The notes: a model not told the origin generated them from the sequence alone. DNA of 64,000 nt from Utricularia gibba (GCA_002189035.1 CM007990.1:1736001-1800000), one strand, 5' to 3'. Positions 16,290 through 63,552 are shown, counted from the first letter of the stretch. Made by a program: numbers and translations.

Positions 16290-17050
16290 GGGTCCATTTG
16301 AAAAGTACCCATCTCTCTCCTACCTAATTTGAAAAATATCCATCATCTCAAAACCTTTTGCAAAGTACCCATCTTTAATATTGTATTTATAAATAAATGC
16401 TAAAAAAACGAAATACATTGACATATCAGTGTATTTCCTGATTTTGTTTTTTTATATATGAGAATATATATATATGTATATAACTATATGCATATTCATT
16501 ATTTTATTAAAATTGTATGAAACAATAATTAATAATATACTATAGAATGTAAATTGTATACTATTGAAAAACGTTGTAATAAAATTTGATATATAATATT
16601 ATTAAATCTAAAAGATATAAAATAAATAATAATATAAATATTAGGTAACAATTATCCATATATTGTAATATTGAATCATTTCGTAAAAAATATGTAAATA
16701 TTATTTTTAATTATTATATTAAATGATTTCATCATATTATGTTTAATTCTAAAATATTGGAAATATGTCTCTATTAATGATATAATTGATATATATAACA
16801 ATTTATTTGAAACATATATTTTTTATAAAATAAATAAACATAAATATTTCTCGAACGCTTTTTAGAATCACAATTAACGTCCAACACATTTTGGACGCTG
16901 TTTCGAGTAGGAAGCCACGCCTAGGAAAGGTCTCATAAGTGAACACATATTGCATCACTCTTTCCAAACATGCGTATTCCGATAGAGTGATAGATCAACA
17001 ACCTCAGGGTTGTCCCCAAAATATTTTCATCCATTAAAACAACAAAATCT
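16290..17050. repeat. Left long TIR of MULE-2 (partner 28395-29078)
   Basis: Inverted matches throughout, e.g. CCCATCTCTCTCCTACCTAATTTGAAAAATA, AAAGGTCTCATAAGTGAA vs rc AAAGGTCTCATGAGTGAA, and TTGTCCCCAAAATATTTTCAT (17017-17037) vs rc of ~28424-28444. Confidence 0.88.
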
Positions 17051-17363
17051 TTGTGTGTTGGACGGTGCTTACAATAATAAGTAGCGGCAAACATATTTTT
17101 GGGCATCACTTCCAATTAGAAGTAGCGCCCAGGAAAGGTCTCATAAGTGATCCATACTGCATAACTCTTCCGGAACATTAGCATTCGAGTAGAGTGATAC
17201 AGTTTTCAATTTATACATATGAGATCAACAACTCAAGATTTCTCCCTAAACCGAAAGTGTAGTCATACACAAAACATTCCAAATAACCAACCAAAAAACC
17301 AAAAGTCTGTCACTACTACGAAATATCCATAAAAACATTCAAAATAAAGATCATGGCCATCTC

Positions 17364-18533
17364 CTACCATTTCTTCTCCTTTCCCTTCCTTCTTCCTTGA
17401 TTTCTACATGGCTCTTCCTCGGGATAAATTACTTGGATTGGGATTGGAATATCTTCAAGAGGCACATTCAAGCTTTGAAGTGTAGTCATGTAAGTGAAGA
17501 TTTGTCCTTCCTTTTCTTTCAGAAGGTGGTTGACATTATCTAGCTGCTTTTCCAATCTTTTATTTGCTGCATTGCTAGCCCTTACTTGTGACCTTTGAAC
17601 CGTGAGCTCCGCATTCAGTTGTTGTGCTTGTTTTCTCATTTCTTCAACTTCATTCTTGAGAGTAGCAATCTCGAGTCTAGCATTCTTGAGGTCCTCAACA
17701 ACACCTTCATTTTCCTTCACCAATTCTCGTAGTTGTTCTATCTCTTGTTGCTCAGAAGCCATCACGTCTTCCCCCATCTCCTCATTTTCACTTTCTTCAT
17801 CTATTTGTCTCTACTATGCTCTTTTCCTTCGACGTCCCCATCTTGCTTCCTCCTCTGCATGACTCCACTTTGGAACTCCATGAATATGCTGTAAACCTGC
17901 ATTAGATGTATTTGTAACAACAGAAAAGGAGCATGAATGATAACACAAAATTTACCTCGAACATTCCTAAGCACATGAGTAGTATTAAGCTCTTTTATTT
18001 GTTGCCATTGATAGTTTTTCCCCTGAAGACACTCCATCATATCATCATAGTCCTCTTTAGGCAGTTTGGATAGGACAAGGGAAATGTCCAATTGGCATAT
18101 GACGGTGGTATAACAATAATATTATACTTATACCAATTGGAAAATGCTCTTGGTGCCACATAGAGTAAATGTTGGTGATTGTAAGACTGAAAATACCAAC
18201 CACGAGTTCGGGGTTCTTGCTTCATCCATACAATGCAAAGGAAATGAATTATAGTAGGTTCGATTTCTTCTTCAGTGCAAAATTGCAAGAAAGTAAATGC
18301 TATAAGCAATGCTGATGGTGTAAGTGCACCCAATGGAAGATTCAAGTGAGTGAGTAAGTTGATAAAAAACGGATTCAAAGGAAATTTTATGCCAATTTGA
18401 AATGCCTTCACTGGGATTACCGTCCCTGCCTCATACTTAATGAGAATGACATAGCAGGAGTAGATTCACCACTTGGTATTTCAAGAGTATAATCATGTGG
18501 AATACCATATTTAGCACGAAATAGGTCCACCAT
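17364..18533 (-). pseudogene. Accessory gene A of MULE-2: TRP28-like domain + coiled coil + basic tail
   Basis: Acceptor TTTCAG|ATAAA ATG; MVDLFRAKYGIPHDY...AFQIGIKFPLNPFFINLLTHLNLPLGALTPSA...GWYFQS; intron 17897-17955; heptad-rich EQQEIEQLRELVKENEGVVEDLKNARLEIATLKNEVEEMRK ending QGRRKGKEKKW*. Carries frameshifts. Confidence 0.65.
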
Positions 18534-19327
18534 TTTATCTGAAAATGCATCATATCAGCAAGATACGCATGAATAGCAATATATTTTGTTGAATGTAGCT
18601 CAACTAATATTTCATTTTTCTCACAACAATGTCAACAGAAGTACATATTCTATCATCACTACGAATGAATAAGCCATTACACATTAACATGGACGACAAT
18701 TGTGTAAGAAGCGAGAAATTGCAATGTAATCTTAAAAATCGAAAAGCACCACCAGAAATCAGCAACATTGAAGTTACCTAATGGAGAAGGTCTATCTAAC
18801 ACCTATATTTTCCCAGAGCTTCACATTCGAGCACAATTGTATTGGCGCTGTGTGGTATGCGCTCGCGCAGAAGAAACCCCCAATTTTGATTGGTTTATTT
18901 CAACCTAATTTGCCTCTGTTGAGTAATTTGCGAAACCGGCTGTTTTATTTTTTTAGACATTGTATTACTCTTTCGGATTATACACAATCCAGAAGTGTCA
19001 TACCGTATGTTCGGGACGCTGCATGTAATGAGAAGTAGCGTCCAGGCAAATATCATCCTAAGTAGCGCCCTTCTATCCTTTGAGTGGAAAACATGATATG
19101 ACATAAAGCTAAAGTAAAATGTAATGTAGATTGTACGATTTAATCCAAACCATCCACTTGATGGAGATCCACCGGTCTAGATCTCATGATTTGCTAGCAC
19201 TATTTTGCTTCACCTTTTCAACTTGCTAATAAAAGGGCGTATTCTCATACTTCTTCATCTTTCACTCAAAGCTAGACTCTCATTTATAAGCAAGTCTGTG
19301 AGTGCTGCAAGCTTTGCAAACAAGGAG

Positions 19328-22300
19328 ATGAATACCAACAGCATCCTCGCAAAGATCTTTTATGGAGGTAACACAATTGAATACCCCAACAATTATAGGG
19401 CATATGATCGGCCACCAATATCCATATGAAGATTTGAGAGTTGTATTTCACTAAATTCTCTTCATGAAGAATTGTATTTGGTTTGTGGTATAGACCCAGC
19501 ACAAAACGAAATCCGAGTAATAATACAGGTTTTTGATTCTTCTTCTAACTGTACTCGAGTTTTGCGGATTACAGCAAACTGTGATTTGTTGTATGCTTAT
19601 AATCCAAGCCATGCACAAATGGGTTTCGACATTTTCGTGGAACGCATTTCAAAGAAAGTCCCTGAAGAAGTCTTTAACGTGGATTTAAATGTTTGCTATG
19701 CTGAAGAAGAAATGAATGAAGGTATGGTGACATAGAGAGAGAAGGGATTTTTTAATGTGTTGTTCCTGAAATTTAGCTTGACCATTATATAATCTATATG
19801 TGCGTAGGTGAGGAAACTCATGAGTACGATGTATACGCTTCTGATGATCCTGTAGGTTGCAATGATATTCCAGTAGATTATATGCAACACTGTGACGTCG
19901 ACTTCGATGTTCAGGGCAATGAGCCACTTGACGAAGATGACAATGGAACTGAGGAAACACAAGAAGAGGACGAGATGATCATGTTTGAATCATCAAATAG
20001 GCGATCTAATGTTGGAGATGGACGATGGATACCTCCATCTTTTATTACCAATAATATGGAAGATGAAGACGAATACTCCATGGATGTCACAGACCCTCTT
20101 CATGTGATAAGCTCTCCTTTTTCTAAACATCAGAGATTTGCATCAAAGGACGCCTTTCATAATGAAATGGTGATGTACACAATCAAAATTGGACGTGAAT
20201 TTAGGACATACTAAGTGCAAGATGGGATGCATATCGAATATCGTTGTTACAAGATGAAAGAGCAAGGATGCAAATGGCGGATTCGCTGTGCATACTTCAT
20301 TCGTGATGCTATTTGGAAGATAACTGCCCTAGAGGAGCCACACACATGTAAACGTTTGGTTCCAAAGTCACTATCTCATTGAAATATCACACCGGCGTAC
20401 ATAGCAGAATATGCAAGACCTTTTCTTGAAGTAGACTTCGGTATGAAAGTCAGCATTTGATAAACGAAAATTCCAAATGTCGTTGCAAAAATAGAAATTT
20501 CGTTATCAAATAAATTTATAAGCCTTAGTCTACACAAAATACAAATTTAGAAAACTTGTATAGTGGATGTCGAGGTCGATCACAAGGAGATGGTGCTTGC
20601 TAAGTGTTTTAGTAAATGTATGATTTCGGATAACAATAGGTCTTAGTCTAAGCTCGGACCAACAGTGGTAAACAAGTTCGGTAAATAGGATCAGTAAACA
20701 ATATCAGGTCTTAACGCTAAGGTAACAGGTACTGGTTTTAAATCAAAATAAAACTAACATGCCTTAAGGATCTACAGGTGGTGTGGTGCCAAAATTCCTA
20801 ATTTAATCTACCATGTTTCTATACTCACAACTTGAAATAACCTAAGTCTACCCAGGTCATTCACCATATTTTCGGCTAAGTTAGTCCTCCATATCATCAC
20901 CAACCTTACAATTAGGTCTACCCGCATGCAAAGCATATAGAACTAGGTCTACCCGGTTCTACTGGTTCTACCCCGGACTAACACCTACTGCTCCTGTCTT
21001 GATTTGTTGGTTTACCTCTAAACCAAGCATTTAAGTTGTGAAGCTACTTGTTCCCCTCCTTAGGTCTACTCATGGTTTGATAGAAACAAGAGCTAAGGAA
21101 CAATGGTCAATTTTATTAAAACTCCTAGACCCATACCACCATGGCTTACCTTAAGGCACTCATAGGGTTTAGCTACTTATGCTTTGAAGGTAAAAAGTAG
21201 TGGCATTAACAAAAAGAAACGAAAATGTTGAGAACATCGTGCAAAAGTTTGTTGCAGAAACTAAAAACATCAACAAGGTAATATAAAGCAGTAAACAGTC
21301 TGGTTTCCGTCTGCTACTGTTCCTAGACCGGAACAGTAGCGCTGAACTGAGTCTTGATCTTCTTCCTTCAAGCTGGAGGTTCTTCTCCAAAAAAATTCCT
21401 TTTCTTCTTCCTTCTCCTTCAGTTTCTTTGTGTTTGAGTTGGGGTTGGGGGAGAAACCCCCTCGTGTGTGTTCTTTGAAAATTCTAGGGTGAACTCCCTT
21501 TTTGGAACTCTCTCTCCTCATCTTTTCTCTCGCCTCCCATTGTCCAAGGCAAGTACATTCTCTAATAGATCTGTTGCTCCAGGCCCTGACTTGTAGACTG
21601 CCGCCATGACATTGTACTCATTGCCCCCCCCTGCACCTTGGTTACTTGCACGAAATCCAGATTTTTCCTTGATTCTTGGGTTGCTGCTAGACTCCAAAAT
21701 GAGGTTAGATATGGGGTGGGCTAAATCCTTTGATTTAGCCCACTAATTACACTAAAAATCACATTTTCCTAAATTGCCTAAAAACACTTAAAATTATAAA
21801 ATAAACACTTAAAAATAATTAAAAATTTATGATTTTCATATCCTAAAAACATGAAAATTTGTGTGCTATCAGCATTGTTCAACAAGTTATCAAAGAGAAA
21901 ATCGGCTATACTGTCTCCTATTATTGGTCATGGTATGACATGCCAAAAAGCTATGAAATTATTTATGGGATATGGGAGTCTTCAGTACCCCTTCTACCTC
22001 AATTTCTTTTGGAAGTACAACTTAGAAATCCAGGCACCATTGTGGAATATCAACATAGGCAGCCGGACATATATGAAACCAAGGTACTAAAATACGTATT
22101 TTGGTCTTTTGGACAATGCATTCAGGCATTCCATTTTTGTCGACCTGTGATCACGGTGGATGCCACCCACCTGTATTCGCGATACTCTCATAAATTATTG
22201 ATTGCCGTAACAGTAGACGCTTCTGGTCTCCTTTTGCCTCTTGCATTTGCGGTTGTAGACAGTGAAAATGATGACTCGTGGTATTGGTTTTTTCAGTTAC

Positions 22301-23358
22301 TGGATCAGCATGTGGTTGCTAACAGGGCATGTTGCATTATATCAGACCGGTGCCCCTCTATAGAAAATGCGACATCAAAAGTTAGGGCATTCATGCCTTA
22401 CAAAATACACCTAGAAGCATGGGAGTACCTAAATCGATTACAATCTGAATCCTGGACTCTAGCATATGATGGAGGAGCAAGGTGCTGTCACAAATATTTT
22501 AATGCTCATCTAATGTTTAATCAACATGATTGCATATTATGTAGGTGCGGGACCTTAACAATAAATCAATTTGAAGGCATGAATGGAGTATTGAAGAGCG
22601 CGAGACACCTACCCCTGTGCTCATTGGCACAGGTACCATTGATTCTAGATGCATATCCACAAATATAGTTACCAATGCTTTCCTTTTTTATGAGCAGGCT
22701 ACATTTGCGCGATATGAGCACTACTTTTTTGATAGACTACAAAAAGCACTACATCAATGTCAGCGACACATTATGTTCGCAGACCAACCTCATAAACTAT
22801 ACTCAAATTGAGATAAACCAATCCCTCATGCATCAATAAAGATAGTTAGAAAATGTTCAAAAGAAGATTCTGGTTACTACTCGTAGGAAAAATGGAAAAC
22901 AAAAGAAGTTCATAGTGATGGTTAGTCAAGGCACGTGCGAGTGTAGGAAGTGGCAAAATTTTGGAATTCCATGCTCCCATGCCCAATAGGTACATGCTCG
23001 ATTCCGTTGATTATGTATTTTATCTTTTGCATTATACTCACTTGTAACTTCATGTTTGAAGGCATCCCGAATGCTAAACATTGATCCTAAGGATCTGATC
23101 GATTCCATGTTACATCTTGACCAGCAGATTCGAATATATGAGAATCAAATTCAGCCATTGCAATATGAGGATAGATGGCCACCGGCACCGTTTTTAATGG
23201 TCCATGACTCCAATCGTAAAAAAAATGTCTACCGTGGGAGACCCCAGTCAACAAGGTTTACAATGACAATGGATTATCAAGGTAGAAAATCGGGACGATA
23301 TACGGGTAGACGGGACGAGTCACTTGAAACAGAGTTCACTCAAGAAAGTCAGTCATAG
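19328..23358 (+). pseudogene. MuDRA-like transposase of MULE-2, interrupted by a solo LTR
   Basis: N-terminal IFYGG (PB1-like) region, acidic linker, MuDR DBD (RFASKDAFHNEMVMYTI...CKWRIRCA...LEEPHTC), MULE domain (VITVDATHLYSRYSHKLLIAVTVDASGLLLPLAFAVVDSENDDSWYWFF), SWIM (CECRKWQNFGIPCSHA). Removing the LTR restores MKVSI|VQQVIKEK. Confidence 0.9.
20458..21871 (-). mobile_element. Solo LTR, 1414 bp
   Basis: TGATA...TATCA termini; perfect 5-bp TSD GCATT (20453-20457, 21872-21876); no internal retroelement sequence. Orientation is inferred. Confidence 0.88.
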
Positions 23359-23629
23359 AGACATCGTGCATCATTTCAGGCATCGTACCATCCGAACCAA
23401 TACCCCATCGATGTGCAACCTAGATCATCGATGCATTATTCTACGACACAAGGAATGTATGATACACATGAGTCCGGTACCTCTACTACACAGAGTGTTC
23501 GTGGGAAAAAGTTATGGGGTTTTTCTTTGTAAGTAAAAAATGAATTAGCATGTCATTATCATTGTATTGTAAAGAATGTCATATAAATTATTTTACACTA
23601 TGCCATACACAAAACAACACTCTTTCACC

Positions 23630-23890
23630 TCTTGGGCGACGCATAGACACGTAAATAGCGCCCAAGGATGCTGAAGGTGTCGTTTATATCCATAAGCAAC
23701 GCCCATAGCATCCTTGGGCGCCGCTTATACATCTAAGTAGTGCCCATGACATTATGAACCAATGCCCAATGCATTTCTGGGCGTCGCTTATATCCATAAG
23801 CAACACCCATAGCATCCTTGGGCGCTGCTTATGATTTGTAAGTGACGTCCAGGAATGTCTAGGCGCTGCTTAACATAGCAAACAACGCCC
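23630..23890. repeat. Array of alternating-orientation AAGYRRCGCCC-like motifs
   Basis: About 12 copies at ~20-21 bp spacing, e.g. TAAATAGCGCCC, TAAGCAACGCCC, GGGCGCCGCTTA, GGGCGTCGCTTA, GGGCGCTGCTTA, TAAGTGACGTCC. The same motif occurs at 16870-17130, 19010-19075 and 28535-28600. Confidence 0.85.
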
Positions 23891-24367
23891 TTTGCTTAGA
23901 GAGTCAGAATTTTGTAATAATAAACTGTTAATTATTTACTTCTTTGCAATTTGTAGTCATAATGTTCTATTTTGTTAGTAAAAATATACTCAAGACCTTG
24001 TAAAAAAAAATTCTAGTTAATTTTTTCAAATATTGTTGGAAAAATACAAAATACTTCAAAAAATTAAATATATACCTACCTCACTTAAATATACACCAAC
24101 TCCCTTTTCAAACCCTATACCCTCTTATTCTCTTCTCCTCTTCTCCTCTTACCCTCTTCCATCGCATCTTCACCAACTTTCACCTTCAAAATCTCCACCT
24201 TCTTCTTCACTGTGTATGTAAATTTTTCTTCACATAACTGCTTCATCTTGAGAAAAATCTTCTTTTGATAAGCACAACATTTCAAATCCAACCAACTCAT
24301 TCAAGGTATATGATGTCTTTCTGTTTTTTATATTTATTACTAACTCCACTAACATTCGTAATGATAG

Positions 24368-25548
24368 ATGACTTTTGGAGACAAGATTAGACAAAAGATA
24401 CTTAGTTCCTGAAAATTTCGTTATATCAGAGAAAGAAGAAGATGAACAAATTTCAGATCAACCACCACAACGTGTTGGCACTCGTGCTTTTGCAGTTAGC
24501 ACCGAACATTTTAGATGTGGGTTAAGGTTACCTATCCAACCCTTTGTAGAGTCCGTGCTTCGTTCGGTGCGGCTTCCATTATCTCATTTAACACCAGCTT
24601 CTATTGGAAATAGTATTGCATTCATGAGGTTATGTGAAGATGATGGATATCCGCTTAGTGTTGGTGCATTGTTTAGCATTGCAAAGTGTTCCAAGGTTGC
24701 TCACACAAATCATTTCACAATATCATCAAAGGCAGGAATTAAAATAGTCATAGGTTTATGAGATTCTTATGGAGATTGGTGGACTAATTTTGTATGAGTC
24801 ACTCCACCGAAAGACATGCAAATAAGAATACCTAGACATCTTTCAACCTCATCCATTGTTGGAAAACCAACAGGTAGAAAATGCTTCCTTTGCAAGACTC
24901 TTTTAATTTTCTTAACATTTTGTATGTTTTCAACTAATAGTTTTTTTTAATATTATAAGGTATCCAACTATTGGATGAAGATGACAAACAGTGTCTTAGA
25001 GCATTACTAATAGCAAAAGACATGAGATGGAGAGATATTGAACCACCAATTTCAAATGTCAGAGGTGCAATACGTATTTGGTGTGGCACTCCTTGTAGGA
25101 TAAGAACAGTGCAGACTCATCTCGAAAAACATGATGTAGAAGAAGAACATACAACACATCATGATGTTTATGAGGAGGAGATGGTTGGTTCATCGGCTCC
25201 ACAACAAGTAGAGGATCATGATGTTGTGCAATTGCGTTCTGAGCTTGAGGAGGCCAGAAAGGAAATAGACCAATTGAAGAAAACCATCTACCAATATGAA
25301 ACAAGATATCCAATGTTCACTTTGCAGTAAATTGATGCTTCAAGTCCAAAGAAACTAATCATTTTAGATATTAACGGTCTACTTGCAGATGTTGTGTACA
25401 TGGACAAGGGACGTGCAGCAAGAAAACCTAACTGCATCATCGAGCGAAGAGCAAGTAAGTAGTACAATTTTGTCACTCTAACTACTTGTGCAGTGACGAC
25501 ATTCTTTTTTTTTATTACAGTTTATTTAATACCAAATTGTAGCGAATT
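24368..25548 (+). pseudogene. Accessory gene B of MULE-2: TRP28-like domain fused to FCP1/NIF-like HAD domain (3' truncated)
   Basis: RYLVPENF...STEHFRCGLRLPIQPF...LPLSHLTPASI; phase-1 intron 24874-24959 keeps the frame; coiled coil ELEEARKEIDQLKK; KKLIILDINGLLADVV (D at 25367); phase-1 intron; then IYLIPNCSEFIK, cut off by an Athila-like fragment. Has stops and a frameshift. Confidence 0.75.
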
Positions 25549-28271
25549 TATTAAAGGGCACCTGCTCTTTTAGTCTTGAACAGGTATTTGGGAGGCTGTT
25601 AAAGTGCCACTCGACAAGGCACCAGCATCATTGCCAAGGTGATCGTGTTCTTTTTGTGGGCGATGATGAAGAAGCTCCCATCAATTTGGGATGGTGAATT
25701 GCAACCCAAATGCACTTCATCACCGCTAAAAATGAAAGAGTGCTGCCATTTGCTTCTCTCATAACCAAGCTCGCCCAACATCTCAAAGTGAACCTTGACA
25801 AGCAGACCCCTCAGGTAGACAATTATTTTCGTTATCTAGATTTGGATGACCTGTTTTCTAACAGCTACCTGAAGGAGGTTGAGGGGAAGGCCATATTTGT
25901 TTAAGCGGGTAACAAAAGTACCATTACTTCTATGCCTCCCTCAATTGTGAATCCATATGGTGCGCCAACAGACTTTCCTCTTAGCACTACACCTTCAAGC
26001 CCCACCAAACACACCCTTCTGCTAGCTATTCAAAGTCTCTAGGAACAGGTTTCTGCACTTTCAACGAAACTGGACACTCTGATGGCTATTGCTTCACACT
26101 CCAGCGTGCCCCATGACTAAGGTACCCTCCGCTGCACTTGATGATGAGGACATCCTCAAAATTAAGTGTGGGGAGGAGTTTATGTTTCTTTTTATTTTCT
26201 AGTATTTTCTGGGCATTAGGACTTATGTGTTGAACTGTGTTGAATTTTTTTTATGTTTTCATGCTTCATGTTTTGTTTTTCTTTTGTTTTTTGTTTGTGA
26301 AAAATCCCCACTATGCTCCTCAAGTACATTTGCTTCCATGAATAAGGCTAGAATTTTAAGGATTGATCATGCTTAGATTCATGAATGTCTTGTTGCTAGG
26401 AAAATACTTCAATTATTTTTCCTTCTAGATATCAAGCTTTTGTTGCATGTTTTAGGAAAGATTATGCCGTGGCTATGATTATATTTTCAGTCCTTGTATA
26501 TATTATGTTGTGAATAATTTTTTGCTGCTCATATAGTGACCTGACCGAGATTGAAAAAAAAAGAGAAGAAAAAATACAAGGGGTGCCAAAGGTAAGGATG
26601 TTTGGCGAAGCCGTGGTTAACACCACACATAAGGTTTCATAATTCAAGCTCTCTTCCCCAAAGCGGGGACCTCTATCAAAAAAAAAAAAGAGAAAAAAAA
26701 AGGTCTTGAGTCACTATAGCATATGTTCTTTGCTGTTTTTGCCTTGATGATTTTAGTGTATAAGTAGTCATTAGTTGAGTCTTATCCTGATGCATGCAAA
26801 CTTAAGTGGGCTGCCTTAATTTGATTGAAGGATAGGAAAAGAATTGGAGTAAATGCCTGCTGTAGGAATGAACGTACCTTATTCGTGACTTAGGTTCTAC
26901 CCTTTTTCGTGGATTGCTATGATTTTCATATTTGAGGACAAGCATGATTTAAGTGTGGGGAATATGTTAAGTGTCATTTTCTAGTTAATTATTAGATATT
27001 ATTATGTGTTAATTATGTATGAAGTTGCCCAAATTAAGAGTCTTATTATTACGTATTTGATTTTTACTAGAAAATTCTTATTTTCCCGTTTTATGTACAT
27101 TTTATGCCTTTTTTTTCACACTTTAACCGAGACATGTCAGGAGACTGTCATGGAGTGTTGCAGGAGGGTGGTCAGAGTTTGACTTTTCGTGCCTTGTACG
27201 CGACTTGGAACGATTGTGGGCGGAAGACTTACACTAATCAAGGCCCCTGACTTACGGCATGTCAGAGTTTGCAGCAATGATTGGGCGCAAACTTGCACGC
27301 AAAAAAAGTCTGGTGGCACACGCAAGACAGAAGGAATTATGGGAAGGGGACCCAATGGAGTTAATGCACGTGCGGAGTGATATAAAAGCCACTTGGAGCA
27401 CTTAGTTTCGAACTTTTACCATTTTTCCTTTCTAGACTTAGACCTTTTGAGTTCTTCCTCCCCTCAAGGAGGAAGAACACTTAGCTTACTTTTCGTTTCT
27501 GTTTTGATGGCCCTTTTGGGCTAAAAACCTTTAGTTTTTTGGGAAGTAGATGAAGTTTCCTTCTAAGTCCTGAGCAATACACTCGATTCTTCGTTGAATT
27601 GATTTCGGATTCTGCATACTTCCATGCGTATTGTTGTAGTCTTTTTGTAATGAACTCTTAGTCAAGGTTCATGAGTAGCAGGCCACTCCTCGCGGATTTT
27701 GGTGAAGATCAAGGTGAAGAGCACCAATTCCAACCCCGTCGGTTCAAGGGAAGTAGCGGATTGTTTGTGGCCTAGGTACCACGATAGTGGACAGGTTGTG
27801 ACCTCGGACGTGCCACTGGCCATTGGCAGCAGCTGGGCACACGCGCGCAATTCGGTTTTGAAGGCAATCGAAGGCAATCCTCTTGTATTCCTCATCGTCC
27901 AAGGGGGAATCACATGAGGCTATTCCCGTGCCTCCTTGTCAATCAGAGTGTAAGGGAGAGTAGGCTATTCCTTACTCTTATAACCAGCTATTAGGAAGAA
28001 ATCAGTGAAAACCGAGGCAAGGATGGACAAAGGCCGGAGATGGAGTCTTATTCCCAGGAACTACGTCCCGTAATCAAGGCCCATCACTTAGGTTGTAACT
28101 TTCATTTCTGCATTTTAAAAACACCCTTTTATAAAACCATGACATTTTGTGGAAGTTTCTTACAAAACACTTTTCACGAAAAACAAATCCCTATGATCGA
28201 TACTCGTACTACGCTTTCTAGTGTCTTACGTTTTAAATATTTAAAATTTGTTGAGGAAACGACGCGCAACA
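25549..28271 (+). mobile_element. 3' part of an Athila-like Ty3-gypsy element (ORF2/env-like remnant, PPT, 3' LTR 26965-28271)
   Basis: INLG..IATQMHFITAKNERVLPFASLITKLAQHLKV remnant; AAGTGTGGGG purine tracts at ~26165 and 26951-26964; LTR TGTTAAGTGTC...GACGCGCAACA homologous to 46701-48001. No TSD; the 5' part is missing. Confidence 0.8.
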
Positions 28272-28394
28272 ACACCATAAAATATATCTCATTTTATTAC
28301 AAAGTGTTTTTAATAATATATAGTTTAAATACAAATCAAGTTATATTTATGATTGTTGTTTAAATTACTAATATACACAATGTACTTTTATCAT

Positions 28395-29078
28395 GAACAT
28401 AAAGATTTAGTTTGTTTTAATGAATGAAAATATTTTGGGGACAATTCTAAAAGTTGTTGATCGAAACTGTATCACTCTATCGGAATGCTCATGTTTCCAA
28501 AGAGAGATGCAGTATGTATTCACTCATGAGACCTTTGTTGGGCATCGCTTCTTATTCAAGCGGCGTCCAGAATATATTGGGCGTTGCTTGTGATTTCAAG
28601 AAGCGTTCGAAAAATATTTATATTTAGTTGTTTTTTAAAAATATATATTTCAAATAAACTATTATACACCAATTATATTATTAATAGAGATATGAAATCA
28701 TTTAATATAATAATTAAAAATAATATTTACGTAATTTTTTATGAAATGATTTAATATTACAATATATGAATAATTGTTACCTAATATTTATATTACTATT
28801 TATTTTATATCTTTTAGATTTAATAATATTATATGTCAAATTTTATTACAATTTTTTTCAATAGCATACAATTTACATTCTATAGTATATTATTAATTAT
28901 TGTTTCATAAGATTTTAATAAAATAATGAATATGCATATAGTTATATATATATATATATATATTATTAGAATTTATTTATAAATACAATATTAAGGATGG
29001 GTACTTTGCAAAAGGTTTTGAGAAGATGGGTATTTTTCAAATTAGGTAGGAGAGAGATGGGCGCTTTCAAATTAACTC
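28395..29078. repeat. Right long TIR of MULE-2
   Basis: Reverse complement of 16290-17050; includes a (TA)n tract at ~28944-28963. Confidence 0.88.
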
Positions 29079-29439
29079 GGATAACAACCATTTGCTCTGA
29101 ATTTCTGCAGGTCAGCAGCCGTTGTTAGGTGCAGGTTGTCAATATCTCTTTTTTGTCCACTTCATGATTGTTTCCGATTTACCAAGAACATCTGGGATTT
29201 ATTATTCATAGGATAGTTCGTGGTCTTTATTCTATTTATCCGGCTTGGGTCTTTATTCTGATTTATATCTCCTTGCTAATATGTGAAGACTCCTCCCAAT
29301 TCATTTATTTACTGATTTAGTATCCAAGCTGGCTCTTCCAATTTACTTCCTGAATTCCATGATTTGGAACCATCTTTTTTGTGTTTTACCTTCTCTATGC
29401 TGCATGCCGAATTTCAATACCATCATCAATGAATGGAAT

Positions 29440-52450: not shown

Positions 52451-53287
52451 TAGATCAAGTAGAGGATTTTATCAATGATATAAATTTGATTACAATTCAA
52501 AGTAAATATCAAAAGATAAGATTTTTCAATGAGTTGATTGTCTCATTGAATGTTTAAAAAATTTAAATACATAAATCAAAGTTTATGTTGAATGTTGTTT
52601 TTTGTTGTAAAACAGATTAGTAAAAAAAATTAATATTTAAAAAATTCCAATTTATGTGATTATTCGAGAATGAAATATATGTTTTATATTATTCACATAA
52701 AAATAAATTATTAATTTTTGATGTAGACATATATTAAGCTCACTTGTTTATTGAATTATAACTCAATAGATTTATATGCTAAAATAGAATAACAATAATT
52801 CACAAAATATTTTAACATTTCATTATCTATATATTTTTCTCAATAAATAGTTATGCATTGCCAAACTAATGTATTCATATTGGTAACGCAATGTATATTT
52901 AAACATAAGTATATATTTAAAATGTTCATGTGAAGACTACTGTGGCAGCATCATGTCTGAAATTTTTATTTAAAATATATTTGTTATGTATATTTTTATT
53001 TCAACGGCTAGTACAAGCATTTGTGACTGTGCAGACTATGGAGTTGCACATGGTTTTGAAAGTAACAGTTGCTATTACTTTATTAATAAAATTTGTCTAT
53101 ATATATGATATGGTTATCTTATAGTTTTCCACTACTTTATCTTATTGTCTCATCACTCATTACTAGAAATAATTCTATTTCAACTTCTACGTGATTGGAG
53201 GTACTCTCAAGTGTCAAGTTTCAGATTTCCACTTGGACGACATTGGTGAAGCCTACAAGGTAATAGGTTTTTTTTATTTTTTATAGA

Positions 53288-55401
53288 ATGGAGGGGTCTG
53301 GTTTGCAAAATTCTTCTCAAGCTTCTCAAACTGATTCTACTATACCTTGCGTTTTTGAAAATGAAAGAGAATTTTCTTTTGGGGAAGACCTTCAATTTTT
53401 ACAAGAGCTTGAATGTGATCCTTTACCCGAACAAGATGATTTTTCTAGTCCTCAAGAAGTGGGTTCTTCTACCTCATCGAGTCTCCTTTGTCATAAAAGA
53501 TTGAAAAACACTAGTAATGATTCTCTGGATATTCAAGAGCATTTTGTTTTTTGTAATCCCAAAAAAATTTCTTGCAAACATTGTGGTAAAGAGTACAATT
53601 TCATAAAGGGTTGGGGAACCGGTACATATAAGAGGCATGTTAAGGAGAAGCATAATGATAAATTACCTCAGTTTCGTCAAACTAGATTATGTTTAGGGGG
53701 TGACAATAGTGTGGGATTATCTAATTTTTTTTTTAATTATAAACTTTTTCAAGTGTGGTGCGTTATTTGATACTTAATGAACTTCTTTTTTCATTAGTTG
53801 AAAAACCTTCTTTTAATGATATGTTGAAACAAGCTCAACTGGGATACAAAAAATTTTCTAGGAAAACCGCACATCATATGGCACTCGAGGATTTCAAAAA
53901 TATACATGACTCTTTAATTTCTACTTTTAAATCTCTACATTGTAATTTTTGTTTGACTTGTGATGGTTGGAAAGGTTGTAACAATGAGAGTTATATTGTT
54001 ATCACATGTTCGTGGGTAGATAATTCTTGGTGTATGCAAAAATGAATTTTAGCTTTTCAAGAATGACCATCACCACATAATGGTTTTTCTATTGCTAAAA
54101 TCATTAAAAAGGTCACAGCATTTTATGGAATATCTGATAGGATTTTTTCTATTTCTTTGGATAATGACTTTGCAAATACAAATGCTATAGACATTTTGAA
54201 AAGTAGCATGAATCCTATGTTAAATAGCATTTTTTTTTCCACACTAAGTGCACTTGTCATATATTAAATTTGTGTGTTCAAAATGATTTGAAAGAATGCG
54301 AAAATTTTTTAACTCCTATTTATGATTTAATTAGTATGATTAGAACTACTCCTAATAGAAGAGAAGATTTTAAAAGGATTTGTCAAGAAAGGAACATCTC
54401 TTATCGTAAATTCAAAAGTGATTGTTCAACTAGATGGAATTCTACATATAACATGTTACAATTTTTTATTCCTTATGAACATGTTCTTATTGAATTTTGT
54501 GAATCTGTCACAGGTTACAATTTCTTGACTCATTCTATTTTTGAAAAAAATAAGAGGTTTAGTAAATTTATTAGAAATATTTTATTCTTGTACTAAGATT
54601 TTGAGTGTTATTTACTACCCAACTTCTCAACTTGTGCTTTCATGTATTTGTAAAATTTCGTTTGCTTTTTATGACCATCAAAGTGATTGTGATTTTTTGG
54701 GAGATGTAGTGCAAAAGATAAAAAATAAGTTTTTGAAATATTTTGATGAAATCCCACATTTGTTTCTTATTGCACCTGTTTTGGATCCCCGGGTTAAGTC
54801 TAGAAGTATGAAAACATTACTTGAATGTATTTCGGAATCATTTAGTGCGGATGATGTTGCTTTTTCCATTAAAAATTGTGAAGAAATAGATGTTGATGCC
54901 AATAATGTTCTACGTGTCATGTATTCCCTTTATGCATCTAAATATAGTGATCCTAGTGTTCCTATTCCTAAAGCATGTAACAATTCGACATTTGATAGTC
55001 GCAATCCAATGGACATTATTCGTAGGAAGCATAGTTCATTTGTGTCCTCCTCTTCATCATCTTCATTAAACTCTGTTGATCAAATTACACTTTACAATAA
55101 TACTCCTATTGTTGAGGGTGTTGATGATGACAACTTTGATATATTGGGTTGGTGCAAGACAAATTCTACTACTTACCCTGTCTTGGCTAGAATGGCCAAA
55201 GATCTTCTAACACCTTCAGTATCTACAGTGGCATCCGAAAGTGCATTTAGTGCAGGGGGACGAGTTCTTAATCACAAGCACTCCAAATTGAACGAAGAGA
55301 CTCTGGAGGCATGCATTTTTCTAAAGGATTGGGTGGAGGCTGTGAAAAGAAATCAAACCTTATCCTCAAGTTCAAGTGAAGATGAAGTTGAAGACTCCTA
55401 A
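53288..55401 (+). pseudogene. hAT (Ac/RICESLEEPER-like) transposase with frameshifts and stops
   Basis: BED finger CKHCGKEY...TGTYKRHVKEKH; CLTCDGW; TRWNSTYNML; C-terminal dimerisation domain YPVLARMAKDLLTPSVSTVASESAFSAGGRVL...KDW. Broken near 53760, 54045 and 54545. Confidence 0.93.
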
Positions 55402-55475: not shown

Positions 55476-56220
55476 GTGGGTGCCTGGAATTCGATCACAG
55501 ACTCGCAAACATCCTCCCAAGGCACCCACATGAGGGAAGAGGGTGTCTGGAAAACTGTCTCAAATACTCATTCCCAAGCACCCATATAACAGAGGTGGGT
55601 GCCTAGAAATCACTCTTCTCAGACACCCACACAATGCATTATTTTGTAGGTGCCATCCAACTATCTTTCTTGGACACTCTCCCGAGGCACCCACATGAGG
55701 GAAGAAGGTGTCTGAAAAACTGTCTCAAATACTCCTTCCCAGGCACCCATATAACAGAAGTGGGTGCCTGGAAATCACTCTTCCCAGACACCCACACAAT
55801 GCATTATTTTGTAGGTGCCATCCAACTATCTTTCTTGGACACTCTCCCGAGGCACACACATGAGGGAAGAGGGTGTCTAGAAAACTGTCTCAAATACTTC
55901 TTCCCAAGCACTCATATAACAGAAGTGAGTGCCTGGAAATCACTCTTCCCAGACACCCACACAATGCATTATTTTGTAGGTGTCGTCCAATTATCTTTCT
56001 TGGGCACTCTCTCGAGGCACCCACATGAGGGAAGAGGGTGTCTAGAAAATTGTCTCAAATACTCCTTCCCAAGCACCCATATAATAGTTGTAGGTACCTG
56101 GAAATGGCCTTACTCACTCTTTCTAGACACCCACACAAGGCATTATAGGTGCCTCGAAAAGGATATCTGACTCTCTTTCCAGACACCTACACGAGGCAAT
56201 GTGGGTGTGTGGAAAATGGT
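55476..56220. repeat. 165-bp tandem repeat, ~4.5 copies, inside hAT-2
   Basis: Units start GTGGGTGCCTGGAAATCACTCTTCCCAGACACCCACAC; the 55-aa periodicity of ORF 55634-56170 confirms 165 bp. Each unit carries several GGGTGYC/GRCACCC motifs in both orientations. Confidence 0.92.
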
Positions 56221-56905
56221 CTAAGCAATAGGTGAATATTCTTTATTTATTGAAATTAATTTGTAGTAATTAGGATATATAAAATCATTTCATTTTCAGA
56301 TTTTTATATTCCAATTAATGCACCAAAAAAATTTTATATTTATGAAAATTAAGAATACCTTCAAAGATTGCACAATCCCCAAATTTCGGGTACGGGTGCC
56401 TAATTTTTCATTTCTTCTGCCAGTCGCCCACATTAGCGATTCTGGGTGCTTCAAAATTGGAGTATTAATTACACGATGGATTCGCATCAATTCAAACAAA
56501 CGGCACACACCTTGTCTGAAAATAACGGAAGCTATTACCGACAACCTACGAAAGTAGGGATATCATTGCGCGTAATCATTAGCTTATGATTTGGTGTATT
56601 AAACCAAATCCCCACGCACCCATACACAGCGCTACACATCACCACCCCACTCCCCACGTTGTCAATTAAGACAACCCTAATCCCCACCCATGTGGTAAGA
56701 AAATTTTCTTACCTCTTTCCCCCTCCCCCCAGCCGAAAGCGACCGGACGCCCCCACAATCCCATCACCTACTTGGAGTGTTCTTTAAATTAAACAAGGTA
56801 AGTGATTTATTTTCCACCATGGGTTGCTGATCTATGTTCCAATTTGTAGTACCTTGTCGAATTATTGTAGTTTGAATTTTTATACAATTCTTATGAGTGT
56901 TTGTA

Positions 56906-58896
56906 GATACACACTTCTGAAAAATTGAGAACTAGATTCTTGATACCGGATGAATATGATATTTGGGACAAAGAACCGGATAAGTTGATTGAGAATGAAA
57001 TTCCAAAATGTGTGGGTCCAATGAGATTTGCCTTAAGCACGGAACATTTTCGTTGTGGTTTGCGCTTACCATTATTGCCCTTTTTAGAAGAAATATTAGA
57101 ATGTTTAGAGATTCCTTTATCTCATTTGACTTCAAGATCTATCTCATATGTGTTGGCCTTTATTAGTATTTGTGAGGAGTTATGTCTTGAGGTGGAACTT
57201 CACTATTTTTTTGCTGTGAGTGTATACTCTATGACTCTAAATAAGAACCACTACACCCTAAAGGAGAAAAAAGGGTTGGTACCAGTAAAGGATGTGAGAA
57301 GAGGATTTGAAGAATGGTAGACAAGTTTTGTTTGGATATGTCCTCTAAAGGAAACCAAATTTCCTCAAATTTATACTAATTCGAGCGAAGTAGGCAAGGC
57401 GAAAGGTAAATCTTGCTTTGTATTGTTAGAAGAAATATGAATAAAAATATTCCATATTTTTATTGAAATATGGAATATTTGTATTGAATGTTTTTATTGA
57501 AGATATTATGATTGAGTGTTTTTTTTAATCTACTCTTATTAAAACTATTGTGATTGAATATTTTTATTCAATATCCTTTTTGAATATTTTTACACTTATC
57601 ATGTTGAATATTCTTATTCAATATTTTTGTTAAATATATTGTTAATAAATTTACTTTTATTGTAGGATTTGATACCTTGTCCAAAAGAGATATACAAGAT
57701 ATTATTATCCTCTTCTCAAGTATGCAAAGGAGTTTTGTTGACATTTTTCCACCATTTATGGATGCACCGGGGACAAAACGCTATTGGTGTGGTGTGTTGA
57801 AAAATCATAGAGTCTTCCAAAAGAATGAAGACTTGTCTAGGAATGAGAGTACACAAGATGGGAATGATGTTGAAGGGGACGAGATCACACATGGTCTCGA
57901 TGATGTCGATGATAGACCTGAATTTATAACAAAGGAGAATGAAGAGCTTCACTACAAATTGGATTGGTATGAGAGTCGTTGGGCATATACCGGACCTCCT
58001 TTTAGTGCCTCTGAGCCTCAACGAAAGCTGATTATCTTGGATGTAAATGGTGTGCTAGCAGACATCGTTTACAGGGCTGGAGCGTCAAGGTCACGAATCC
58101 TCCAGATAAAATCATATATGACCGATCAGGTATGTTAAAACAATACTTATATTTGTGTGTTATGTGCATTAATGATTTGTGAGATCATAGGTAACTTTTG
58201 GTGCAAATTATGCAGTCTTTCTACGTCCACATGCCCGCGATTTTATTAGGTGGTGTTTGGATAATTTTGATGTAGACTTATGGTCATCCCGTGGGGGTAT
58301 GTGTGCTGCATCTTTTTTTTTGTTAGTATTTATAATTGGTGCAAACACTTGCAAGTGATTTATTTTGTAAGGAGCAACTACAAGCAATCACTAAATGGGT
58401 CTTTCCACCTTCGTTATTCAACAAACTCATTTTCGTATGGGACCAAACCATGATGACGGACACCGGCGTACATGTTCACAACAATCATAGCAACACGGTT
58501 TACATGAAGGAGTTGGGTCGTGTATGGGCTGTCAACAATGGATTGAACACAAGATATGACCGTCACAATACCTTATTAATTGATGATTCACCTCACAAAT
58601 CAATGAAAAATCCGGTAAGTCATTTTTTGCTAGTATACTCTTGCATACACTTGGTTATACCTCAAAACTAACCCTTCAATTTTTTGGAAAATAATGTTGT
58701 TTTTCCAAGTCCCTATTCGCATACTAATAGGGATGATGCATCACTCAATGTGGATGGTGAGATGCGGACTTTCCTTGAAGGGTTACAGTATACTAATGAT
58801 GTTCCAAGTTATGCTAATGAGAATCAAATAGGCCAGTCTCCCATACGTGAGGGACATGTCTTATGGGAGTATTATGCATGCCTACAGGATTGTTAG
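56906..58896 (+). pseudogene. Accessory gene C of hAT-2: TRP28-like domain fused to a complete FCP1/NIF-like (C1271.03c-like) HAD domain
   Basis: LRTRFLIP...STEHFRCGLRLPLLPF...IPLSHLTSRS; phase-1 intron 57406-57665 joins the exons in frame; RKLIILDVNGVLADIV, VFLRPHARDFIRWCLDNFDVDLWSS, FVWDQT, YMKELGRVW, NTLLIDDSPHKSMKNP|ENNVVFPSPY, IGQSPI...LWEYY. Lesions: TAG at 57318, a 1-bp deletion near 58100, an altered acceptor near 58686. Confidence 0.82.
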
Positions 58897-59079
58897 AAGG
58901 AGCCTCTGATTTCTAAAGAGCCGTCCCATTTATTTTCAATTAGACATACACTTACGAAATGTCACATTTTGATTATGCCATTGAATTTATTTTAAAATAA
59001 ATGAATAAATTAATGACAATACCTACGAAACAACTTATTTATACTGTATGGCACTTATTTTGATTTTTTAAATTAATTT

Positions 59080-60300
59080 ACAGGGACGGCACATACATAA
59101 AAATGTTTCTTGTAGGGGCCGCCAAAATATTGAAATACTATTAAATTTGATTACAGATGTGAATTGTTTATTAAACGATTTCAAATTACCATTGGCATCC
59201 ATATTTTAAAAAATATTTTTTCGTGCATAATTATTTTAAATAATTTTATGCTAAAACACAGAATTATAAGTGTGTTGTTGACGTACAATCACATTCTAAT
59301 TTAAAACATTTTTAGCAAAAATATGATACGAATGTAAGTTCTTGTCTAACTTAACCTTAGATGTTGTGACGTTAAGTAGAGTAAAATATTTGAGATACAA
59401 TATAGATATCGTGTGAAAAAACTTAATTTTTATAATCCTACCTTAAATATTCAGCACATTACAATATTTATGATGATAAACGTCATCATCAAGGACCATT
59501 TATATTAAAGAAAACATAAATTTCCATTTCGTGGTTTAGGGTTTTCAGGGTTTTAGGGTTTATGGTAAATGAAATATCTGAAATATTCCTGTCTTTTTAA
59601 TATGTTGCAAATGTGAAATTTTGGACAACACATACGTAACATTGCATTTTGTAAGGGCGGCAAAAACAATTTATGGAAACACTCTCAAATGTACTTATGG
59701 ATGTGAATTGTTTATTAAATAATTTACAATTCAAATTGACGTCCATTAGATACAAAATATTTTTTGTATCGAATTTCTATTTAAAAAAATTGGTTCAAAA
59801 ATCTGAAATTACAAATGTATAATTCAATTGTAATATAATGACATTAAAGTTTATAAATAATCATCCACATTTACATTAGACACTAATGTATCTTGTTCTC
59901 TAATTTAAATCAAATATTATGATGCTTTATAAAATAAATATTGAACATATATTTGCAAAGAAACGTGGTTTTTATTATTTTTAACGTTACAATATTGGTG
60001 ATGATAAACTTCATTACTATGAACAAAAACTACTAAAATTTTAAATGTGTAGTATAATTAAGGGTTTAGGAAAATTAAATGTGTAATAAATTCTCCTCAT
60101 TTTTTAAAAAAACGTAAGAATAGTTGGATTTTGAGAAGGTACATACAAACACACGTAATGCATAGGTGTTGATGAAATATATCCATAACCTTTTTCGTTT
60201 ATCATTTTTAAAATAATGAAAATTTGAAATTTGGGACGGCACATCAAACAATGAGTATTTTATAGGTGCCGCAATTTTTTAATTATTTTAAACAATTGAT
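59080..60300. repeat. Degenerate ~550-600 bp tandem repeat (2+ units) between genes C and D
   Basis: GGGACGGCACAT...TAGGKGCCGC-like block recurs at ~59083, ~59622 (variant) and ~60232, with shared downstream GATGTGAATTGTTT...ATTAAA and ACAATATT..TGATGATAAAC segments. Confidence 0.55.
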
Positions 60301-60717
60301 TTAGACTATATATGGATATAAATTTTTCTATGCAATATGCTTTTCTAAAAAAGTTGGCGTCCACTATATAAGTGTACAACCCTACCTAGTTTACATCGCC
60401 TTTTGCTGCATACAAAGGCTCTTCTTATCATTGTCATCGCGCTCCTGAAAACCCAGAATTCGTCGGCTTAAAATCCGGTAATCTTGTTATTGCAACTTAT
60501 ATTATTTTTTGTGAAATGTATTCCATGCATTTGTTGCTGTAGTATGCGTTATATATTAAGTTGGGTTTAGTTATTAAAAATTGTCTTTTCATATAATTAT
60601 GTATTTAGTTGGGTTTAGCTGCGTTTTTTCATCGTTAATATCATGTTTGTTTTGCTATTTTCCATTTCCTTATGTTTAGAATTTCATTCTTATTATGTAT
60701 CCTTTATTGATTAGGGA

Positions 60718-62154
60718 ATGGATAGATTTCGTGTTAAATATTTCATCCCAACCGATTGGTTGACAAGTCCTGCTCCGCAAAACACACCTCTTGATGCCAA
60801 TCCCCCTCATGAACATTCCAATGCTTGGCTTGTGTCTCGTAAAACATTTGATGTTGGTCTTAGGCTACCTATTCATCCCTTTGCTCTTGATGTGCTCACC
60901 TACTTAGATTGTCTATTGGGTTTTTAGCACCATCTTCCTATAGTATCTTAGACTTCTTACACTTGTGTGAAGAAGAATATGTAGAACCTTCCTTGTCAAA
61001 TTTTTTAACTTCCAAAAAAAAGCTCCTACTGGAACATGGTATTTTCAAGGATTACCAAATACTAGATTTTATCAAAACCTACCTAGAACTGTGGCACGAT
61101 GGGATAAACTTCTTTTATGGATTGTACCACCTACATCTTTTGAAATTTCAAGGCATTATCCATTAACATATCCTGGGGATGATGTTATAAATTCTCGTAT
61201 TGAAAAAATCAATGTGAATGAGGAAACTAGACATGCATTAAAAAGTCTTTTGCAATCAAAAAGATATATGACTGAAGACATCATCCCAAAGTATGCTCAA
61301 ATTCGAAGTAAGTCTTGTTAATTTACATTATTTTTCCAATATGTTATTTTACTTATTTATTCAACACTATGACAGCACTTCAAAACATTCATGGTGTCGT
61401 TGAGTGGCGGTCTACACCAACATCAAGGCGAAATCGTCATCAGCTTGTTGTTTATGAACAACCCATTCCGCTAACCATCGATAGCAATGAACAACAGGTA
61501 AATAAAGTAGGAATATTATTTAAATTTTTAATTTTCTCTTCAAATAAATAAGGTTTGCAATATAAAAAAATTTTTGTGTAGAAGAATTCTGAACAAGAAA
61601 ATGGAGATGAGGAGAATGAAGTACCTATTCATGAGAAGGCTGAAGTGTATATTAATGAGGAGCTCTCAGTTGCACGCCAACATGACAAAGAGCTCATTTT
61701 AAACCAATATAAACACATTCAACGGATGGAAAATGAGGTAATAAAAATGAAACTTATTTTGCTAATACATGTGATAGTTGTTTTTTTATGTTTTCTAATT
61801 TAGTTTTTTTTCTTCTTTAGATAACAGATCTGAAGTTTCAGATTCAAAAAAAAAAACAGAATGGATGATTTGGTAGCACACCAATCTGTATACAAGGTTG
61901 AATTGAAGATAAAAGGCGATGAATTGATTGCTGGACAACAAAAATCTATCAACTTTCAATTGGAAATAATGAAGCTGAATGAAAAAATACAGGTGTTAGA
62001 AGAAGAATTACAACTTCACAGATTGCAAGCTCAATTGAATGAAAACGATGTTATCGCAATGGCTCAACAAAGAGACATACCTTCGACAAGTGCGGGCACA
62101 AACAAAGATAAAGGAAAAGGTAGAGGCAGACCCAAAGGAAAGGAAAAAAAATGA
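60718..62154 (+). pseudogene. Accessory gene D of hAT-2: TRP28-like domain + coiled coil + basic AT-hook-like tail
   Basis: TATA at ~60364; 5'-UTR intron ending just before the ATG; MDRFRVKYFIPTDW...KTFDVGLRLPIHPFALDVLTYL; later exons; coiled coil FQLEIMKLNEKIQVLEEELQLHRLQAQL; ends KGKGRGRPKGKEKK*. Frameshifted. Confidence 0.68.
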
Positions 62155-63552
62155 AAAAGAGTCATTAACAATGTTGTGTTTTTTTTTTCAAAAGATTTGA
62201 CTTATTTTGTAGTATTATATTTCATTTGTGACAATCTAATTATTTCGAAAATGTCGCTTAATTTTCTAATAACTAATTGACATTTTTTCTAGTAAAATTA
62301 TAAAATTAAACGTAAAAGCAAACATACAAATTACAAAAGAGATAACAACAATATTTGTTTTTTCCAGTAAAATTAAATTATTTCGTATTATTATGGCTCG
62401 CTCATACCTAAACGGCACCTACTTATTTAGTAGGTGCCACTACTAGAAAATTATTTCGTATCATTTTTTTATACGTCCTACTAAATTCTCTAATGTGTAG
62501 GTATCGCTTCAAATTTTTAATAACTGAATCATGTTTTTTCTATTAATTATAAAATTGAACATAAAAAACAATCATACGAATTACAAAATGGACGATAACA
62601 ATATTTATTAATTTTTAGTGAAGTTAACTTATTTCGTATTATATTATATATTGAACATATACCAAATTATTTATTATATATTGAACTTATATCAAATTTA
62701 TTTATTTCATATTATTATATTAAACTCCCACCAAGTTACTTATTTTACAGATGATGTTAATATAATATTATTATGTTTCATTTTTATGTGAAACTGTAAG
62801 ACTAAATTCTTTAAATGTATTCACTTTTTAATAATAAAAAAATATTTTCTCATAAATACTAAAGATTTAAATTAAAAATAATTTATTAGAAATATAGTTG
62901 AAAAAAATAATTTTTCGTATATATATATTAATTTTATTTAAAATAAAAATCAATTCTTTAAATATTTAATATTTATTAAAAATTTCAATTACACACACCA
63001 ATAATTATTCATATAGATGCCTGGAAAGCAACTACAAACAATAACCGCGGTTCCGGTTACAGTTCGGTTTCGTAAATCTCGGTTTCGGTTTTGAACCGAA
63101 ACCGTCCGTACGATTCCAGTTTCGGTTCGGTTCAAACCTTCCGGATACGGTTCCGAACCGAAACCGGAATCGTTGCCCATGACGAACCGTGGTTTTGGAA
63201 CCGACGATTCGCTGGAACCGTTCGAACCGAACCCACCTCTAGTTCCATATCACACAAAAATATCGTTGTCTACAAAACTTGTAACCATCATTCAATGCAC
63301 TTGAGACACTCTTATTGGCTAGTAACCAAAATAATTTAAATTATATTATATTTAGACTTTTAGTATTAATTCGCAGAAATTAATTGATAAGTCAATGCCT
63401 CCGACCATGATGAAAATAAATAATCTTTTTTGTTTGTACTTTTGTTTTTCCATCGCAGTTTCTCGTTCTCGACGTCACTGCCTCCGCCGATATGACTTTC
63501 CGCTCGGCGCTCCCCCTAAATTCTTAGCCGGTTTTCATGGTCGTCACCCGTA

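Follow-up and report, generated by a model that had tools for sequence, protein, structure and literature searches.

Can a single family of accessory genes be used by unrelated superfamilies of plant DNA transposons? The question is raised by a stretch of 64,000 nt from Utricularia gibba (GCA_002189035.1 CM007990.1:1736001-1800000; hereafter the window, within which all coordinates are counted), where a few host genes lie among nested transposons. A first-pass annotation placed genes A and B in a Mutator-like element (MULE-2), genes C and D in a hAT element (hAT-2) and a second copy of C in a further hAT element (hAT-1), and proposed that a portable two-gene cassette had moved between the superfamilies. 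This placement of the genes was borne out. We consider it very probable that A, B, C with its second copy C', and D belong to a single family of transposon accessory genes with two old paralogous types, both of which are present in both kinds of element. Just as probably, genes of this family passed from one transposon superfamily to another long ago, in two or more moves or in one joint move. Taken as a whole, structure and evolution together with the mechanism proposed below, this explanation is in our judgement rather likely, and the data point to a family of accessory proteins that serves unrelated transposons and has not been described before.

Gene types and the elements that carry them

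MULE-2 (16290-29079, plus strand) is flanked by a perfect 9-bp target-site duplication (TSD), GATAACAAC, at 16281-16289 and 29080-29088. Its terminal inverted repeats (TIRs) are about 0.7-0.9 kb long, and the left TIR (16290-17205) pairs with the right (28397-29079) as its 78-95% identical complement. The mudrA-like transposase lies in pieces at 19430-23355 on the plus strand and includes a MULE domain at 21847-22665 (Pfam PF10551, 9e-15). The transposase domain, the long TIRs and a TSD within the range of 8-11 bp identify the element as a MULE. Both A and B lie between the TIRs, with the TSD outside and the transposase between the two genes: A (17367-18533) is on the minus strand, followed by mudrA and B (24368-25459), both on the plus strand.

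The transposase of hAT-2 (53267-55398, plus strand) combines a BED finger, an RNase-H-like fold and a hAT dimerisation domain (PF05699, 1.9e-21; PF14372, 6.6e-10; BED finger PF02892 sub-threshold at 19.0 bits, cutoff 20.6). Genes C (56907-58893) and D (60718-62151) follow in tandem on the same strand, between the transposase and the 3' end of the element. That end is made up of subterminal repeats (CGGTTC/GAACCG) and the 3' TIR (62966-63241), with a candidate TSD, GTTCCATA, at 63242-63249, and is sharply defined at 63241, host DNA starting about 5 bases past it. Two paralogous genes for Core-2/I-branching enzymes (PF02485) lie at 36399-37826 and 63246-64000, and their upstream regions are 84% identical. 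Given that their homology begins about 5 bases past the hAT-2 3' end, the first paralog serves as an empty-site control for that end, and the paralog of the 3'-flanking host DNA, at 36399-37206, has no interruption.

The element hAT-1 (40985-45971, plus strand) is an internal-deletion derivative of the hAT-2 family. It has TIRs TAGAGGTGTG and TAGTGGTGC and an 8-bp TSD, ACCAATGG (40977-40984) and AGCAATGG (45972-45979), which agree at 7 of 8 positions. DNA identity to hAT-2 is 72-84% over blocks at 41467-41929, 41947-42177, 43495-44886 and 45670-45924. C' (41947-44886, plus strand) is 51-72% identical to C in protein per aligned block. C stands at the same place in two hAT copies whose DNA differs by about 20%. 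The dimerisation domain, RNase-H-like fold, short TIRs and 8-bp TSD place these elements in the hAT superfamily, the ends of hAT-2 having been checked on the 3' side only.

The membership of D in hAT-2 is further informed by a repeated motif, TTTTRTAGGKGCCR, of which 0.15 copies would be expected in the window and 6 are present; every one is on the plus strand, in non-coding DNA of hAT-2 (span 55642-62439). Three copies lie in a 165-bp tandem array (55509-56222) before C, a fourth follows C, and the other two flank D, one on either side. As the motif stands on both sides of C and D, it ties the surroundings of D to the rest of hAT-2. These copies could be protein-binding or regulatory sites of hAT-2.

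All of the motifs quoted in the first-pass annotation for A-D were found in place. STEHFRCGLRLP is at 24498 in B and 57036 in C; KLIILD(I/V)NG is at 25352 in B, 58025 in C and 44046 in C'; RxKYxIP is at 18498-18518 in A (minus strand) and 60730 in D; and GR(R/P)KGKEKK immediately precedes the stop at 17379 in A and 62125 in D. For alignment we used read-through sequences, in which each gene was translated across its breaks with X at every break. B and C were 32% identical over 319 aa (E 3.5e-51, 159 bits), with 41% over 119 aa (E 2e-31) and 30% over 161 aa when aligned piecewise, and A and D were 27% identical over 336 aa (E 3.4e-26, 94.7 bits). The proposed homology of A with D and of B with C is upheld by these alignments. 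The four cross pairs gave only 39-58 bits. The treatment of A/D and B/C as two unrelated pairs has nevertheless to be abandoned, for all four genes are of one family, with a TRP28 domain (Pfam PF04195, Transposase_28) followed by a long helix.

Gene structure agrees within the long type, B and C, where the two predicted phase-1 introns were recovered, each with a GT donor at an aligned codon. The first comes after ..GKAK(G) in C and ..GKPT(G) in B, the second after ..YDRS(G) in C and ..ERRA(S) in B. An intron in the 5' untranslated region had been proposed for all four genes. In A, B and D the start codon is preceded, at a distance of 0-7 nt, by an acceptor-like AG, which on sequence grounds fits that proposal; in C the place of the ATG is taken by ATA.

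The grouping of the genes was examined in a maximum-likelihood tree built from the first 200 residues only, without the tail or the NIF-like domain described below, together with 12 database TRP28 proteins. A grouped with D (support 100/99) and B with C (94/89), and the four genes stood together (89/89), apart from the database proteins. Approximately unbiased (AU) tests rejected A with B (p 0.0026) and C with D (p 0.0018); these groups were named after the tree had been seen, although the alternative that suggests itself is duplication within one element. The C-terminal features are concordant with this N-terminal tree. Together the tree and the AU tests indicate that the split between the types predates the separation of the MULE-borne and hAT-borne copies.

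A test of selection, suggested in the first-pass annotation, was made between C and C'. The dN/dS ratio was 0.33 over 292 codons (bootstrap 95% interval 0.23-0.46) and was lowest, at 0.21, in the exon encoding the NIF-like domain; the shared transposase fragment gave 0.49. Given that later neutral decay raises dN/dS, the value of 0.33 points to real constraint while the hAT family was active. This shows that C evolved under purifying selection, as a selected part of the hAT lineage.

Domains of the short and long proteins

Against PF04195 (gathering score 26.2 bits), A, B and C score 27.6, 37.2 and 31.8 bits, respectively, so the suggested profile search for this family succeeded in three of the genes. 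Scans of A and B gave no other Pfam family above cutoff. D, in which frameshifts lie near 60903 and 61022, is represented by a frameshift-split piece that has no Pfam match; it aligns with the conserved TRP28 core and is sister to A in the tree, and a helical region follows. The predicted TRP28 fold has a pLDDT (predicted local distance difference test) of 84.8. A winged-helix reading of this fold was dropped, as the best Z score was 3.4. Homology of TRP28 to the plant mobile domain (PMD, PF10536) also found no support: there was no Pfam match at E up to 0.1, and MAIN/MAIL proteins were absent from the Swiss-Prot fold matches, with a single PMD-named entry, at rank 19, among the fold matches to AlphaFold Database (AFDB) clusters. 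A fold search of Swiss-Prot models returned Arabidopsis ASY2 (residues 761-856) and At3g60930 (158-278), each with probability 1.0 and E about 9e-3; these host proteins may hold domesticated TRP28-like segments.

In the short type, the C-terminal 148 residues of A were modelled as one 113-residue helix (pLDDT 95-98) followed by a disordered basic tail. Weak Pfam matches to many coiled-coil families are consistent with a long helix, and from the model the helix after TRP28 could form a coiled coil. The tails lie right at the stop codon and read GRRKGKEKKW in A and GRGRPKGKEKK in D, the latter including R-G-R-P. An AT-hook has an R-G-R-P core flanked by basic residues. To judge by its residues, the basic tail of A and D looks like an AT-hook. 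The reading frame of A is broken near 18440-18456 and at 18064, with more breaks or introns further downstream.

In the long type, TRP28 and a helical region are followed by a domain resembling the NIF/FCP1 family (PF03031, gathering score 21.8 bits). Searched singly, two exons of C matched this profile at 14.5 bits (profile positions 34-67) and 13.7 bits (positions 91-126); the matches are collinear, NIF was the sole family matched, and their simple sum is 28.2 bits. The best solved relative of the region was UBLCP1, a weak match (E 0.18). Motif I reads LDVNGV in C and C' and LDINGL in B and departs from the canonical D-x-D-x-T/V: all three copies retain the nucleophile Asp and have Asn in place of the second. 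Since D-x-N-G is common to three copies this diverged, it is ancestral rather than a product of decay. The later haloacid dehalogenase (HAD) motifs (Ser/Thr, Lys and DD), assigned by reading the sequence, can be recognised in order in C as DLWSSR, YMKEL and LLIDDSPHK. The domain is therefore like that of the FCP1/SCP/UBLCP1 C-terminal domain (CTD) phosphatases in its collinear weak NIF and UBLCP1 matches, in its HAD motif order and in the retained DD motif. It is unlike them in that the general-acid Asp is missing from all three copies, in its position behind TRP28 and a long helix, and in exons that score under the Pfam cutoff.

C has lost its start codon, which is replaced by ATA, and is disrupted by a stop (57318) and a frameshift (near 58080-58090); C' contains stops, a deletion and a 1.2-kb insert resembling a long terminal repeat (LTR) at 42245-43479. 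B is interrupted by two in-frame stops (24759 and about 24795), an ATG lies out of frame, and its NIF domain is reduced to the first ~25 residues (KLIILDINGLL). The second intron donor of B is retained; no exons were found downstream of it, and B lacks those for the later HAD motifs. A weak Transposase_32 match (25698-25901) and an LTR copy nested inside MULE-2 (26965-28272, plus strand; 87% identity to 46701-48002) occupy the place expected for the 3' exons, and the LTR copy is probably part of what removed them. A 5-bp TSD is not obvious for this copy.

Proposed transfer between superfamilies and its alternatives

TRP28 is known as the antisense extra open reading frame (ORF) of Retand Ty3/gypsy elements (PMC11963269, PMC6317226, PMC7264820). 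It is of unknown function with predicted DNA binding, the Retand region that holds it lacks similarity to other known transposable elements (TEs), and TRP28 itself has no similarity outside TEs (PMC11963269). In the literature searched we found no report of TRP28 outside Retand retrotransposons and no paper linking NIF/FCP1 domains to transposons, which agrees with the earlier remark that no description of the combination was known to its author. A-D resemble the Retand ORF in the same Pfam domain above cutoff, in being TE-borne non-enzymatic extra genes, in the coiled-coil-like regions that often follow and in their unknown function. They differ in that A-D reside in class II elements, are spliced, fall into two types of which one is NIF-fused, and form their own clade. 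In Retand, the antisense ORF is found between pol and the 3' LTR, whereas A and B lie inside MULE TIRs and C and D between the hAT transposase and the 3' end. What is new here is the NIF-like fusion of TRP28, within a transposon accessory family common to superfamilies; the window also contributes a partner of the short type and shows that, in two superfamilies, the genes group by type.

Other accessory genes are known from MULEs, namely mudrB in maize MuDR and vanB/vanC in Arabidopsis Hiun/VANDAL, where VANC acts in anti-silencing (PMC6446971). A and B are like mudrB, vanB and vanC in being second or third genes of a MULE, adjoining the transposase. Unlike mudrB and VANC, which are confined to particular MULE lineages, the family of A-D crosses superfamilies, and A and B match PF04195 only.

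The form of movement first proposed, in which one physical two-gene unit was copied from MULE to hAT or the reverse, seems to us doubtful. That both types occur in both elements, grouped by type, is the part of the proposal that stood, and the similar tree path lengths (1.87 for A-D, 1.59 for B-C) would fit one event, though as a weak hint only. Contiguity did not stand: A and B are separated by the transposase and differ in strand, whereas C and D are in tandem. Moreover, no DNA similarity was detected between MULE-2 and the hAT elements for the type partners, and hAT-1 has C without D. Given the lack of DNA similarity and the protein identity of only 27-32% between type partners, any movement must be ancient. 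Joint transfer, two separate transfers and separate uptake from a third source cannot be told apart, as the data fit each.

It is less probable still that the genes are separate nested elements, Retand fragments or another transposon, which inserted by chance into the MULE and the hATs. Such insertion is suggested by the known association of TRP28 with Retand (PMC11963269), by the LTR copy 1.5 kb downstream of B and the LTR retrotransposon adjoining hAT-2, by the missing 5' end of hAT-2, and by the nearest examined database TRP28, which is antisense behind a pol gene at locus L001. This last protein (P0002), the closest database TRP28 with a readable locus, lies about 3.6 kb behind reverse transcriptase (RT) and integrase, a Retand-like layout; the layout of a second locus, that of P0008, is ambiguous. 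However, no private TIRs or TSDs were found around A-D, so that the nested element with its own ends and TSD, named in the first-pass annotation as one outcome that would overturn it, was not seen around C or D. The position of C does not differ between the two diverged hAT copies, and the gene was under selection; B is codirectional with the LTR close by, in contrast to the antisense TRP28 ORFs of Retand (PMC11963269); B and C agree in the position and phase of two introns; and the clade of A-D stands apart from the database TRP28 proteins (89/89). Captured host-gene fragments of the Pack-MULE transduplication kind, functionless for the elements, are very unlikely: MULEs often capture host fragments (PMC6446971), NIF is a host-type domain and every copy here is broken, but against this stand the dN/dS of 0.33 between C and C', the whole multi-exon architecture retained across superfamilies and the lack of TRP28 similarity outside TEs (PMC11963269).

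Several results weigh against a transposon accessory family common to two superfamilies, the explanation that we prefer. A single MULE and a single hAT carrying both genes were examined, in one window, and A, B, C, C' and D all contain frameshifts or in-frame stops and are pseudogenes, so the intact copies that had been sought are absent from the window. D is absent from hAT-1, where a search for remnants gave AT-rich low-complexity matches only. The 5' end of hAT-2 was not found by TIR pattern, subterminal repeat density, TSD or paralogous host-gene flank; it was probably lost along with the 3' half of the adjoining LTR retrotransposon (46701 to ~51100). The first-pass annotation had passed over this end, the truncation of the NIF domain in B to ~25 residues and the frameshifts and stops in every copy. 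At the level of domains, each NIF match lies under the Pfam cutoff; Pfam found no AT-hook in the 30-residue tails of A and D, the tail of A reads GRRKG and not RGRP, and the TRP28 model has no relative among solved structures, so that DNA binding is predicted only.

Searches for relatives weigh in the same direction. With the TRP28 piece of C, phmmer returned 15 weak matches among 1.84 billion protein representatives (best 38% identity), none with NIF, and neither the middle piece of C nor its NIF exon gave a match in word-index searches. A TRP28 profile recovered only Ipomoea relatives of one earlier match and a few others, all without NIF, and the B and C alignment gave no confirmed locus in metagenome contigs. 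One Ipomoea batatas gene model (P0017) joins TRP28 to a lipid-transfer-protein domain (PF14368) and is probably a chimeric annotation across a transposon.

Proposed mechanism and surrounding sequence

We propose the following model for the products of this family. TRP28, together with the AT-hook-like tail of the short protein, would bring the proteins to the element or to AT-rich DNA, and the long helices would pair short and long proteins. Catalysis by the NIF-like domain is probably lost or weakened, because the general-acid Asp is Asn, and the domain may hold or slowly act on a phosphoprotein, for which the C-terminal domain of RNA polymerase II is the obvious candidate. As an outcome, element transcription would be favoured or silencing opposed. 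This mechanism as a whole, from DNA targeting and pairing to phosphoprotein engagement and anti-silencing, is something we infer and put forward as tentative.

Precedent comes from the PMD, which is found in Ogre retrotransposons and MULEs (PMC6446971, PMC6317226) and, in the host, in PMD-phosphatase modules such as MAIN/MAIL1-PP7L and the MAIL3 fusion (PMC7156037). The PMD is thus an example of one accessory domain common to LTR retrotransposons and DNA transposons, and of a domain of transposon type that acts alongside a phosphatase, or is fused to one, in gene regulation and silencing. It differs from the present case in that TRP28 is not a PMD by profile or fold, and the phosphatase here is of HAD/FCP1 type, not PPP.

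A broader reading, which we regard as equally speculative, is that TRP28 and the helix define a two-part accessory system of several plant DNA-transposon superfamilies. An AT-hook-tailed partner would target DNA, an altered CTD-phosphatase-like partner would act on polymerase or chromatin phosphoproteins, and the system would protect against silencing; on this view, the antisense TRP28 of Retand would have its origin in a DNA-transposon gene of this kind, nested in an ancestor of Retand.

TRP28 is widespread in flowering plants and has so far been a hallmark of Retand; the spliced MULE and hAT genes indicate that the family crosses transposon classes, as the PMD does. For the Retand extra region, an origin from a nested TE was set aside for want of similarity to other TEs (PMC11963269), and A-D supply such a similarity. 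The NIF-like fusion with its conserved D-x-N-G suggests a transposon protein that engages host phosphoproteins. Furthermore, in TE annotation PF04195 has served to mark Gypsy elements (PMC9055855), a practice that would mislabel DNA transposons of this kind.

Other features of the window touch these elements or lie beside them. The motif arrays of the elements are of TTTTRTAGGKGCC and TGGGCGYYGCTTA. By motif count, TGGGCGYYGCTTA has 7 matches in the window against 0.11 expected; six form an alternating-strand array between mudrA and gene B (23693-23872), and the seventh is in the right TIR region (28578-28590). The Ty3/gypsy retrotransposon adjoining hAT-2 (46701-51100) has a 5' LTR, gag, RT and integrase and breaks off after integrase. 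Its LTR recurs as the copy nested in MULE-2. At L001, the RT beside the Retand-style antisense TRP28 gene is 73% identical to that of this retrotransposon. An LTR-like repeat related to its LTR is present in two copies, at 33219-34454 and at 42245-43479, the latter inside C'.

A second, unrelated MULE transposase (6498-8584, minus strand) has a sub-threshold MULE-domain match and a SWIM finger, with no TRP28 gene nearby, and is adjoined by a 108-residue lysine-rich ORF (5386-5709). Finally, a direct repeat of 349 bp, 89% identical between its copies at 38887-39225 and 39646-39994, surrounds short ORFs that resemble retrotransposon fragments.

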